Part shown: positions 5,598 through 61,241 of the stretch, piece after piece | Numbering within the stretch: position 1 is the first letter of the stretch | How the letters are laid out: each line of letters opens with the position of its first letter | NCBI RefSeq assembly: GCF_031769215.1 | Contig: NW_026782462.1 | Location: forward strand, 1,116,001-1,180,000 | Length of the DNA: 64,000 bases | Source of the DNA: Ylistrum balloti | Taxonomy: Eukaryota | Direction: 5' to 3' | Notes under the pieces: model-generated | Told to the model about the DNA's origin: nothing | Database searches by the model: none | Seen by the model: the letters and a program-made list of their open reading frames with translations, nothing else | Position numbers and translations under genes: made by a program

Positions 5598-5775
5598 ACT
5601 TCCTGATCAAAATTTTGACATTTCGTAAGATCACATTGGGTTTTTCGAAGTCGTCTCTAAGGGTTCAGATTCACGTTCTTATCGTCATTGACGAGTCCCA
5701 GGAGAACGGAACAACTGTATGATAACTTTAATCCATTACGTACGCAAATATATCTGATTCAATATAATTTTTATT
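5598..5775 (+). mobile_element. HHR-bearing retrozyme-like element, copy A (degenerate)
   Basis: HHR-like motif at 5684-5724: GTCA TTGACGA GTCC CAGGA GAAC GGAA CAACTG TA TGATA. The upstream flank (ATCAAAATTTTGACATTTCGTAAGATCAC...TCGTCT) and the downstream flank are shared with copies C, D and F. Confidence 0.7.
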
Positions 5776-5805
5776 TTTTTTTCATTTTCTCATTAATTGC
5801 CAATT

Positions 5806-5925
5806 AGGGTTCAACATTTAGGCCCTTAGCATCACCGACAAGTCGTAGAAGGAAGAAACAGCTGTATGATACAGTTAGTTCATTATTTAGCTCTACTGTA
5901 GCTAATTCAAACTTTGTATGAATGT
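5806..5925 (+). mobile_element. HHR-bearing retrozyme-like element, copy B (degenerate)
   Basis: HHR-like motif at 5830-5871: CATCA CCGACAA GTCG TAGAA GGAA GAAA CAGCTG TA TGATA. Downstream CAGTTAGTTCATTATTTAGCTCTACTGTAGCTAA matches the downstream flank of the 39 kb array. Confidence 0.75.
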
Positions 5926-5951
5926 TGCTTCTCACTTGTGTGTAATTTCAG

Positions 5952-5989
5952 GTCGTGATGAAAGTGGTCCACCTGTAAATGAATTGGTG
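5952..5989 (+). CDS. Candidate 38-nt exon (G/R/S/C)RDESGPPVNELV, gene unidentified
   Basis: TGTAATTTCAG acceptor and GTATGA donor with one open frame. No recognisable homology. Confidence 0.3.
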
Positions 5990-7107
5990 GTATGATCAGC
6001 TTGTATCAAGTGTAATGTGGGAAACATTGTGAGGTGTCATTCTGCTCTCTCTTGATTGACGTCTCCATCAGTATCAATGTTTCTTCTATTGTTAAATGAT
6101 TACACTTGTTTGCATTGCACTTTAGGTTAATCAATGGATTTCCTTTTTCAAATGTGATTAATCAATCAGAGCTATCCTTTGTTTGAGTTTTGCAGTTTTA
6201 GACCTAACTTCACATACCTATCTTCTGTAAAGCCTACAAATTGACATGACTACAATTAAGCTTATATATCTTATAAATGACTGACTTTCTGGCAAAAAGA
6301 CGAATAAATGAAACAGTCTTGTGTCACAGCGAAGCTCGTGCGAATCCTGACGCGACGATTAATACTGCAGTCACACGCAAGTTCGCGGTACGCTTGATTT
6401 ACCACCACCGACAGGACCTTGCCCTCGGGTATCAGTAGAAGTGATAAGCTTCCAATGTCTTTTATAGGATAATGTCATTTAGCTAAGGACTTTAACACGT
6501 TGTGATGCTAACTTCAGTGATGAACCTCTACGTCACGATACCGCGGCGTGATCGTGGCTCAGTTAGTCACCAACTCTTCAGTTTTTTTTTGTAAATATGA
6601 ACTGTTGTCGTTTACTCGAGCATTGTTGAATTCTTAGGTCCAGATCCATTATAGATATTTAAAGAAAAACAAGAAAATACATCAATATCAACATAATCAT
6701 AATCCAAACTTCATTTCAATAAAAAGAGGGTAAAATATGAACAAAAAAATGTCTTACACAGAAACTCATGGAATATAGTTGATGAAGACAATGGGGAACG
6801 GTAATGGAGCAGTATTGTTAACATAGCGGGCGACCCTTCCGGATCGACTGCCCCTAAACTTTGTAAACGTTGACATGTCATCATTCTTTAACGTCTCTGA
6901 AAGTCTCATTCCATGGCTATATTTCGCACTTTACAATGCCTCCATTTCGGCCATTAGTAGAGCGTTTGTACTTGTAGGATTTGGCTTTTGGCTCATGTTG
7001 AACCATACCCAAGTCCATTTTTTACATGTTTTTTATGTATGCTGTAAGTGCACTCATCCATCTACACTTTGAATGTTTTGTTCCATTTCTCCTTATTAGC
7101 TTACTTG

Positions 7108-58100: not shown

Positions 58101-58714
58101 AGGATTAACTCTTTTATGATTGTATAGCTTCACGATTTAACAGTTGTGATAGCGGATGGTGCAGCAGAAACTTAATTTACACATAAAGTATACTTCGGCC
58201 GCACATCGTCCACACACACGCACAAAATCGAAAGCACGAATGTGATATAATATCGCACATTTTGTGTAGCTCGGTAAAATGGTTGGTTAACAGTACGGAC
58301 AGATTAGATGGGAAACTCCTGTAGTTACAACTTAACAACAAACACAGACATATAGATTATCAAGTTCATTTTTATTTTAAAGTTATTATAGTGCAACTGG
58401 ACCTTCGTTAAATAGTCTCGTAAGGGTGCAGTTTCACATCTCACAGATCAGCGAGCGGTTAACACTAAGCAACACATTTACATGTATACAGGTATCGGTA
58501 AACACGTGGTCCGTACCGACTGCGTTTCCGGTGTCACAAACACAACACATAAAATTTACTCGTTTCACAACCAAATGATAAAAAATGCCAGTCTCAGAGC
58601 GATTGTAGATGAAATAACGTTTCTGACAACACAATGCCTTAGATGATTCATTGTCGAGACAATGAGCGACATTCATTTAGTGTTTACATGTATAATTTAT
58701 ATATAAGAGTATCT

Positions 58715-60304
58715 CTACACAAACAATGGTAAGGAGTGACACTTACACACGGGAGTATATAACAGACCAGGCTATATCTGATACAGGTACACAGACAATG
58801 GACAGGTGTGACACTTACACACGGAAGTATATAACATATCAGGCTATATCTCATACAGGTACACAGACAATGGACAGGTGTGACACTTACACATGGGAGT
58901 ATATAACAGACCAGTCTGTACCTGATACAGGTACACAAACAATGGACAGGTGTGACACTTAAACACGGGAGTATATAACAGATCAGGCTATATCTCATAC
59001 AGGTACACAGACAATGGACAGGTGTGACACTTACACACGGGAGTATATAACAGCTCACTCTGTACCTGATACAGGTACACAAACAATGGACAGGTGTGGC
59101 ACTTACACACGGGAGTATATAACAGCTCACTCTGTACCTGATACAGGTACACAAACAATGGACAGGTGTGACACTTACACACGGGAGTATATAACAGCTC
59201 ACTCTGTACCTGATACAGGTACACAAACAATGGACAGGTGTGACACTTACACACGGGAGTATATAACAGCTCACTCTGTACCTGATACAGGTACACAAAC
59301 AATGGACAGGTGTGACACTTACACACGGGAGTATATAACAGCTCACTCTGTACCTGATACAGGTACACAAACAATGGACAGGTGTGACACTTACACACGG
59401 GAGTATATAACAGCTCACTCTGTACCTGATACAGGTACACAAACAATGGACACGTGTGACACTTACACACGGGAGTATATAACAGATCAGGTTATATCTG
59501 ATATGGGTACACAAACAATGGACAGGTGAGACACTTACACACGGGAGTATATAACAGCTCACTCTGTACCTGATACAGGTACACAAACAATGGACAGGTG
59601 TGACACTTACACACGGGATTATATAACAGATCAGGCCATACCTGATACAGGTACACAAACAATGGACAGGTGTGACACTTACACACGGGAGTATATAACA
59701 GATTAGTCTGTACCTGATACAGGTACACAAACAATGGACAGGTGTGACACTTACACAGGGGAGTATATAACAGATCAGGCCATACCTGATACAGGTACAC
59801 AAACAATGGACAGGTGTGACACTTACACACGGTATATATAACAGATTAGTCTGTACCTGATACAGGTACACAAACAATGGACAGGTGTGACACTTACACT
59901 CGGGAGTATATAACATATCAGTCTATATCTCATACAGGTACACAAACAATGGACAGGTGAGAGAGACACTTATACACGGGAGCATATAACAGATCAGGTC
60001 ATACCTGATACAGGTACATAAACAATGGACAGGTGTCACACTTACACACGGGAGAATATAACAGCTCACTCTGTACCTGATACAGGTACACAAACAATGG
60101 ATAGGTGTGACACTTACACACGGGAGTATATAACAGATCAGGTTATATCTGATACAGGTACACAAACAATGGACAGTGTGACACCTACACACAGTAGTAT
60201 ATAATAGATCAGGCTATATCTGATACAGGTACACAAACAATGGACAGGTGTGTCACTTACACCCCTGGGTATATAACAGATCAGGCTACATCTGATACAG
60301 GTAC
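58715..60304. repeat. 72-bp minisatellite array (about 22 copies)
   Basis: Unit GTACACAAACAATGGACAGGTGTGACACTTACACACGGGAGTATATAACAGCTCACTCTGTACCTGATACAG. Confidence 0.98.
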
Positions 60305-60785
60305 TCAACACAAAGATGTATGGCTTGAACTGGAAACATACCTAGTTAAACCCTGGTATATATTGAAACTAAAATATCCATTCCCAGACATACTCTTAAG
60401 TAATTTCTAGATTTACATCAACCGCGACAGAAACGCATATATATACGATAAAACAACATCTCGTTTTCCAGAACTTTGAGGTGTGATCGATGATGGCAGA
60501 ATAAAAAGTGTTATAAACATTGGATGGTTTATTCTAGGAATTCAGGTGATTAGATGATATAGCCAGTGTTGAAAATTTGACTGGGGAAGATGACTAGTAT
60601 TGTGAGGTTAAGTCAGAGCGTCTGTCAATTAAAGAATATTTTCAATGTTTATGGATGGAAACACAATGGCAACTAAAGTAGATAACCGGTGTTTAAACGG
60701 TCGGCCTTAAGCAAACATCGAAACTGTTCTTAGAATTTAGCGGTATAGACATACGTAGAATTGACTCAATGTATTATTTACTTAC

Positions 60786-60833
60786 CGTTGTTGTAGTCTG
60801 TTGTGTATTCACGGATTTTTATGGTGTTTGCCC
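60786..60833 (-). CDS. Candidate 48-nt exon (G/R/W)ANTIKIREYTTDYNN, gene unidentified
   Basis: TTTTTACCCAG acceptor and ACG|GTAAGT consensus donor. Open frame, phase 1-1. Confidence 0.45.
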
Positions 60834-61110
60834 CTGGGTAAAAATCGACTCTGCAGGATTGTTCACCCAAAATATATGTGTTCATGTAGAGTGTGCCCTT
60901 GGTAACAATTATCCAGAAAATACACGTTATTATCAGAGAAGCCAGGTTCATCACAGCATATAGCCATCAACCTCTGATATTTATTTTGAAGATTTGTTGG
61001 TAAGCAAAGCGTTCAAATGATTGTGCAAAAGACACAAAAATAAATAGCACCTTTTTATACAGTACAAAATTGGAGTTAAATATGGCAGAGCCAAACACTT
61101 CATTATACCG

Positions 61111-61241
61111 CGACATAAAGTTGTTGCGTCCTTCTATGACCCGTCAGTGATGCTGAAAACCTAAACATTGAGGACATGGAGACGATGGAGGAAAATCCAA
61201 AGCGATCGAAAGAAAAGTCAAAATGTTGATGGGGAGGTACA
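61111..61241 (-). mobile_element. HHR-bearing retrozyme-like element, copy F (degenerate)
   Basis: 61111-61152 (minus): CATCA CTGACGG GTCA TAGAA GGAC GCAA CAACTT TA TGTCG. The upstream flank aligns with copy D (GAGACGAT...GCGATCGAAAGAAAAGTCAAAATGTTGATGG). Confidence 0.75.

Follow-up and report, generated by a model that had tools for sequence, protein, structure and literature searches.

We analysed a 64,000-nucleotide (nt) stretch of the genome of the mollusc Ylistrum balloti (C605:1116001-1180000, hereafter the window), which carries dispersed copies of a non-coding element of about 390 nt with a hammerhead ribozyme (HHR) near its 3' end; the genome-wide scans covered the 648-Mb assembly. 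An earlier note made from the letters of this stretch had named six sites at which HHR motifs stand on shared flanks (plus strand: 5684 and 5830; minus strand: 10971, 13448, 39036 and 61111), and all six proved to be such sites. Its count of six copies was too low. A whole-unit profile of 390 positions gives eight insertions, namely A, B, C as two, D, the copy at 17701-17896, E and F, and the two copies beyond the original six (10529-10703 and 17701-17896, both minus) were found with a profile built from 30 genome copies, which the window copies match at E = 1e-63 to 1e-7. The copies and their ribozyme remnants are as follows.

5540-5764, plus strand: copy A, profile positions 102-341 of 390 (nhmmer E 5.8e-34)
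5684-5723, plus strand: HHR relic of copy A, with core C3 changed to T and GAAA to GGAA
5788-5947, plus strand: copy B, profile positions 216-377 (nhmmer E 2.7e-36)
5830-5870, plus strand: HHR relic of copy B, with CUGA changed to CCGA and GAG to AAG
10529-11105, minus strand: copy C, about 1.6 units head to tail over 666 model positions (nhmmer and length scan)
10888-11105 and 10529-10869, minus strand: the two head-to-tail units of copy C, whose pieces in order cover profile positions 140-388, then 3-171, then 215-386
near 10972-11010 and 10620-10651, minus strand: HHR relics of copy C
13361-13582, minus strand: copy D, 5'-truncated, profile positions 165-386, reaching the family 3' end (E 6.2e-50)
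17701-17896, minus strand: an extra copy, absent from the earlier note, 5'-truncated, profile positions 188-385 (nhmmer E 3.7e-17)
38952-39365, minus strand: copy E, an array of seven 45-nt HHR units and, after it, the 3' arm (Tandem Repeats Finder, nhmmer)
39036-39351, minus strand: the array of copy E, 7 x 45 nt, its unit being the ribozyme itself (Tandem Repeats Finder)
61018-61395, minus strand: copy F, a full-length unit, profile positions 3-387 (nhmmer E 1e-83)
61111-61150, minus strand: HHR relic of copy F, with GAG changed to GGG and GAAA to GCAA

A chance origin of the motifs shared within the window is excluded. The 16-mer that follows the ribozyme core, GAAACAGCTGTATGAT, occurs 12 times at three or fewer mismatches where 1.14 occurrences are expected, a number reached in 0 of 100 shuffles, and CACTGAYGAGTCC occurs seven times at one mismatch or fewer (0.13 expected). 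The upstream pattern and both downstream variants described earlier agree with the family alignment, and the copies are non-coding as claimed: no open reading frame (ORF) longer than 49 amino acids (aa) overlaps the full-length copy F, and none of note lies over the others. Most window copies are decayed, again as proposed. The single HHR with intact core and helices, at 39043-39093 (minus), is the last unit of copy E paired with its neighbour; each of the remaining relics, as read from their letters, has a lesion in the core or in a helix, copy D keeping its core with helix II and the helix III palindrome broken. The window copies are best described as dead relics. Because copy B begins only 24 nt past copy A, the HHR-bearing segment is duplicated locally. 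As to the division into two subfamilies, copies A and C share the derived states TCCCAG, GAAC, TTTAATC and ATCTGATTC, so that a second subfamily comprising A and C, rarer or older than the rest, is plausible. For copy C, only two weak relatives were found genome-wide (71-73% identity).

The majority sequence of the family HHR reads GCAUCA CUGACGA GUCCU AGA AGGAC GAAA C AGCU G UA UGAUGC. It provides a helix I of 6 base pairs (bp; GCAUCA/UGAUGC), a helix II of 4-5 bp (GUCC(U)/(A)GGAC) and a helix III of 2 bp (A-U and C-G) with the palindromic loop AGCU, and cleavage is predicted directly after GUA. The canonical metazoan type-I HHR has a 6-bp helix I, a 4-bp helix II and a helix III of 1-2 bp with a small palindromic loop, and is weak alone and active as a dimer of two nearby copies (PMC4209133). 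Judged by its fit to this consensus fold, the family HHR is a canonical metazoan type-I motif. We also considered the minimal HHRs of Penelope elements, in which helix II is longer and helix I shorter, and dropped this reading since the helix lengths fit canonical type I (PMC4209133).

The unit that carries this ribozyme is about 390-400 nt long and non-coding, with a GC content of 38% in the majority sequence, under the ceiling of about 45-50% that applies to non-LTR retrozymes. On the profile, the HHR core lies at position 263, the predicted cleavage site near 295 and the 3' end near 388. When 30 copies were aligned with their flanks, they displayed a common sharp 3' end (...TTTTGTACAATCTT), whereas the 5' end, sharp in each copy, differed in position from one copy to another. 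The fixed 3' end, ...TGTACAATCTT, stands some 92 nt beyond the predicted cleavage site; the majority sequence ends in a T run, and no poly(A) or microsatellite tail was seen at the 3' end in the 30-copy alignment. In several loci (L033, L035, L037, L038, L041 and copy C of the window) the 3' end continues seamlessly into the conserved 5' region GAGATTGCAGG TGGTAGACACTGC..., so the unit closes upon itself at about 390-400 nt. Measured from the fixed 3' end, the lengths of 65 sampled insertions form a continuum from 57 to 764 model positions, with 50 insertions at 380 or fewer, 5 at 381-400 and 10 above 400. Most copies are therefore 5'-truncated single units rather than long tandems, and about 15% cross the seamless junction into a second unit. 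Self-comparisons of the copies gave no terminal repeats, no explicit search for a primer-binding site or polypurine tract being part of this comparison.

Exact patterns, each controlled by its own reversal, were then counted across the assembly.

Intact-core motif CTGAYGAG-N11-CGAAACAGCTGTA: 5,181 matches (control 0)
Junction between two 45-nt HHR units, up to 2 mismatches: 16,615 matches (control 0)
25-mer of the 5' arm, up to 3 mismatches: 1,544 matches (control 1)
25-mer spanning the head-to-tail unit junction, up to 3 mismatches: 567 matches (control 0)

The family therefore runs to thousands of copies, which bears out its supposed abundance, and they lie on hundreds of contigs in both orientations. 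A search with copy D returned at least 1,445 first-look candidates, 40 of which were scored (76-85% identity). Given the 5,181 intact-core motifs counted, the circumstance that the earlier note had named as fatal to its reading, a genome devoid of intact-core copies, does not arise. Divergence from the majority sequence ranges over 9-38% in the 67 long copies (median 14%), and apart from segmental duplicates no pair of loci is more than 89% alike; by this divergence, the family copies are to be regarded as old.

Most genomic HHR copies reside in 45-nt, HHR-only minisatellites inside the element, whose layout then becomes 5' arm, (45 nt)n, 3' arm. Between adjacent 45-nt units the CAGCUG palindromes pair to give a helix III of 6 bp, and a short loop closes helix I; two neighbouring units together are a predicted type-III hammerhead. 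Rfam at its gathering thresholds gave no match in the window. In E-value mode it reported Hammerhead_3 at 39043-39093 (minus; 45.4 bits) and Hammerhead_1 at 39260-39304 (minus; 26 bits), Hammerhead_1 scores lying at 23-26 bits overall, and an array elsewhere in the genome (L086) reached 50.3 bits for Hammerhead_3 against a gathering score of 48.5. A two-unit array piece folds better than its shuffles (z = -2.8). Of 143 array units, 60 keep the core and 35 keep the core and both helices. In the last two units of the window array (39037-39097, minus), helix III is formed by CAACUG/UAGUUG instead of CAGCUG/CAGCUG: all six pairs are kept because a G-to-A change is matched by C to U in the next unit, a single case.

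Taken together, these features suggest a retroelement family of the non-LTR (long terminal repeat) retrozyme kind that is old, abundant and non-autonomous, a reading to which we assign a probability of about 0.72. The same type of element had been proposed from the letters of the window, and that proposal is largely supported by unit size, the HHR, the non-coding low-GC sequence, the junctions, the copy number, the coexistence of Penelope-like elements and the mollusc host. The fixed 3' end, variable 5' truncation, lengths above one unit, seamless junctions, lack of coding capacity and dispersal argue for reverse transcription of a multimeric or circular RNA from one site, as is seen in Penelope-like partial tandems (PMC8557442) and in non-LTR retrozymes (PMC7229834). 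In the mechanism we envisage, multimeric transcripts would be cut by the hammerhead acting as a two-copy (dimeric) ribozyme, and the resulting unit-length RNA would possibly be ligated into circles; multimeric or circular element RNA would be reverse-transcribed from the fixed 3' site by the enzyme of one of the genome's Penelope-like elements, and the complementary DNA would be inserted with variable 5' truncation. That the 45-nt arrays, with at least 16,600 units, are in addition transcribed and self-cut into 45-nt RNAs or possible circles, and that the fixed 3' end, together with lengths that extend continuously past one unit, is the footprint of rolling-circle reverse transcription primed at one internal site of a circular RNA, seems to us rather unlikely as a combined proposition; if true, the 45-nt RNAs would be the smallest retrozyme-like unit known.

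Several results weigh against the retrozyme interpretation. The earlier note had called for a Penelope-like partner sharing terminal sequence and none was found, 30 loci with a GIY-YIG domain bearing neither the family tail nor its HHR. Target-site duplications did not emerge either: the longest word shared by the flanks averages 4.66 against 4.54 in mismatched controls, in copies that are old and have approximate boundaries. The sole sequencing run covering the region derives from genomic DNA (depth about 7.5x) and lends no RNA support. Long multimers of the 390-nt unit were absent from the sampled insertions, the longest of which has about two units, and the single-copy HHRs score below the Rfam Hammerhead_1 gathering score. 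Over 52 distinct copies, 82.6% of the cells for the 13 HHR base pairs hold a formed pair, compared with 82.2% in shuffles. Covariation support, for which these pairs were counted, was thus given up as no better than shuffles, as expected for dead copies; the copies hence decay neutrally, and the fold is a property of the source sequence. A rod-like fold of the unit-length RNA was likewise unsupported on the two decayed natural units (z = -1.4 and +1.3 against shuffles). Lastly, the junction segment GTACAATCTTTGAGACAGCAGGTGG is also amplified, with a period of about 43-47 nt (C185:231450-239102, C26:9362-9816 and C52:1307229-1307534). Since this segment forms arrays too, minisatellite formation is not specific to the ribozyme segment, and the HHR arrays may be a by-product of a general habit of the genome.

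Three other explanations were weighed. The copies might not form a separate non-autonomous family but derive, heavily truncated on the 5' side, from the 3' terminus or pseudo-LTR of an autonomous Penelope-like element. Penelope insertions show just this combination of a constant 3' end, 5' truncation of varying extent and partial tandems (PMC8557442), and at two loci, L076 and L077, parts of the family element are found downstream of Penelope ORFs. At neither did the association hold: the family element near L077 is a separate insertion, because L083, a more complete representative of the L077 lineage, terminates 185 nt past its stop codon, and the 3' region of L076 has eight weak relatives, none of which extends to the tail, so both were rejected as element-bearing Penelope copies. 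Moreover, a conserved junction, with no ORF upstream of it, closes the unit upon itself at about 390 nt, and none of the 30 GIY-YIG loci has the unit as its own terminus in contiguity with reverse transcriptase (RT) and GIY-YIG. Where the examined Penelope elements have a recognisable HHR, its motif differs, its flanks are its own and it lies about 800 nt after the GIY-YIG domain (for instance ...CTGATGAAGCCC...GGGCGAAACCGGTA). We therefore hold a Penelope-fragment origin to be improbable. A short interspersed element (SINE), or another retroposon dependent on a long interspersed element and transcribed by polymerase III, with an incidental hammerhead like Sm-alpha of Schistosoma, would also be short, non-coding, abundant and 5'-truncated; weak words resembling an A box and a B box (TGGTAGAC, GGTTCAGAAT) were spotted by eye in the 5' region, and the majority sequence does end in T residues. 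Yet ARAGORN found 0 transfer RNA (tRNA) genes in 12 loci with full-length copies and in the window, and Rfam in E-value mode gave no tRNA, 5S, 7SL or small nuclear RNA match in four full-length-copy loci, and a tRNA-like head was rejected. The SINE match that the earlier note had thought capable of overturning its reading was thus not encountered, the head being without similarity to tRNA, 5S or 7SL. There is no poly(A) or microsatellite tail, and head-to-tail partial tandems are not a SINE habit, which makes this origin decidedly improbable.

The third alternative places the repeat at the DNA level, as a satellite or as the arms of a minisatellite-bearing DNA element of a kind common in bivalves, with the hammerhead as a functionless relic. 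The layout of two arms around (45 nt)n would suit it, as would the junction-segment arrays of about 47 nt, the 27.7% of the window that is minisatellite and the rate of change in the array core, which at 7.3% is only slightly lower than the 9-15% at other positions. Such an element should hardly give sharp 5' ends that vary by copy next to one common 3' end, some lengths above one unit, or dispersal over hundreds of contigs in both orientations, and the self-comparisons held no hint of terminal inverted repeats, a dedicated inverted-repeat search not being among them. We consider it very improbable as the whole explanation. The arrays speak for some DNA-level amplification, yet this alone fails to explain the 5' truncation pattern.

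Membership among the non-LTR retrozymes is provisional, as it is based on comparison of sequence architecture. Non-LTR retrozymes have been described in coral, mussel and axolotl (Cervera & de la Pena 2020, PMC7229834); their units of 150-450 nt, a range that takes in the present one, stand head to tail in anything from a dimer to a multimer. The present family shares with them a canonical type-I HHR with a short palindromic helix III, a non-coding low-GC unit of a few hundred nt, head-to-tail repeats, thousands of copies, a mollusc host and coexisting Penelope-like elements. It differs in consisting mostly of 5'-truncated singles with at most about two units and no long tandems seen, in a 3' end fixed about 92 nt after the cleavage site and in having most of its HHRs in 45-nt HHR-only arrays. 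Its likeness to the ~350-390-bp repeats of the mussel Mytilus galloprovincialis (PMC7229834) is one of architecture. Penelope pseudo-LTRs with minimal HHRs (Cervera & de la Pena 2014, PMC4209133; Craig et al. 2021, PMC8557442), from which a 2026 preprint derives the non-LTR retrozymes (bioRxiv 10.64898/2026.07.22.740005), likewise form partial head-to-tail tandems with a 5'-truncated upstream copy and carry an HHR near the 3' end that is expected to act as a dimer. The family lacks their attached RT/GIY-YIG ORF, and in contrast to their minimal HHRs its own is canonical, with a 6-bp helix I and a 4-5-bp helix II.

The 45-nt arrays recall very short tandem retrozymes and the tandem minimal HHRs of axolotl Penelope elements (PMC7229834), in that the array unit is little more than the ribozyme. 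Their 45-nt unit falls just under the reported 51-bp minimum, they are nested between the two arms of a 390-nt element and their type-I motif becomes type III across neighbouring units. Since vertebrate tandem retrozymes have consensus lengths of 51-972 bp and monomer proportions from 0 to 1 (bioRxiv 10.64898/2026.07.22.740005), the 45-nt arrays and the excess of single units stand at or near the edge of the described range. Sm-alpha of Schistosoma and newt satellite 2 resemble the family as interspersed or tandem repeats with a type-I HHR and a weak helix III; from these the family differs in that no polymerase III head was detected and in belonging to another phylum, and the likeness is again in architecture. 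The HHR repeats of Sm-alpha and newt satellite 2 are about 330 nt long.

A full-text literature search with the HHR sequence returned no paper, and none of the papers searched connects hammerhead ribozymes with scallops. The analysis changes no concept, as the HHR type, the host phylum and the link with Penelope are all published. It does delimit a mollusc retrozyme family by unit, ends and genome-wide counts, and the 3' end away from the cleavage site, the continuous lengths and the junctions provide a data set for the open question of how retrozymes are copied into DNA. The family also accounts for part of the minisatellite load of the genome.

As for the Penelope-like elements themselves, 51 GIY-YIG matches exceed the Pfam cut-off, several of them in open frames of 755 aa, and one Penelope C-terminal half has 139 matches in the genome. 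Short-word matching of the family tail and head (60 nt each) turned up no further case among 31 Penelope loci. The loci L007 and L010, considered as a pseudo-LTR pair, were rejected: they have no RT ORF and represent a segmental duplicate next to a satellite with a 43-nt unit. At L051:1-2500, about 58 copies of a 43-nt satellite unit stand beside a segmentally duplicated copy of the element. Two Penelope lineages, at L062:1780-2600 and L063:1790-2600, carry a second ORF with cysteine/histidine-rich motifs directly after the GIY-YIG gene and, behind it, minimal hammerheads of their own. A Penelope-like element is repeated head to tail at C422:240415-261997 with a period of about 5.36 kb, 4 of its 5 copies retaining 755-aa frames. 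In L083 (reverse complement), positions 785-1058 match 3247-3520 as an inverted, truncated Penelope 3' end upstream of the ORF, which is the inverted-repeat layout described for Penelope insertions.

The remaining features of the window are these.

29380-29392, minus strand: candidate for one more relic, an exact CACTGACGAGTCC followed some 130 nt downstream by GGACGAAA
23808-23940: assembly gap (N), outside every copy
1-2306, 3950-4201, 7110-8155, 13865-17250, 24839-25460 and 26559-27719: minisatellite arrays
28246-29087, 31479-31838, 34135-36183, 40837-41228, 53085-56507 and 58716-60313: further minisatellite arrays

The relic candidate at 29380-29392 gave no match to the family profile. The gap has flanks unrelated to the family, and the closest confident copy (17701-17896) is about 5.9 kb away; the gap affects no copy and bears only on density per 64 kb and on copy spacing, which are approximate. 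Together with the array of copy E (39036-39351), the minisatellite arrays number thirteen, have units of 26-125 nt and make up the share of the window given above. Nearly all window ORFs of 130 aa or more fall within them and are an artefact of stop-free repeat units, the sole exception being an ORF at 23508-23951, which enters the N gap. In the array at 24839-25460, the 63-nt unit contains AAGATGAAGGTGAC...GTCATCGAAACGT, which looks like a minimal hammerhead of the Penelope type in which CUGA is mutated. The segment 13619-13700, immediately upstream of copy D, has a summed contig depth of about 10,700 in the ~7.5x DNA run and, on account of this depth, belongs to another, even more abundant repeat.

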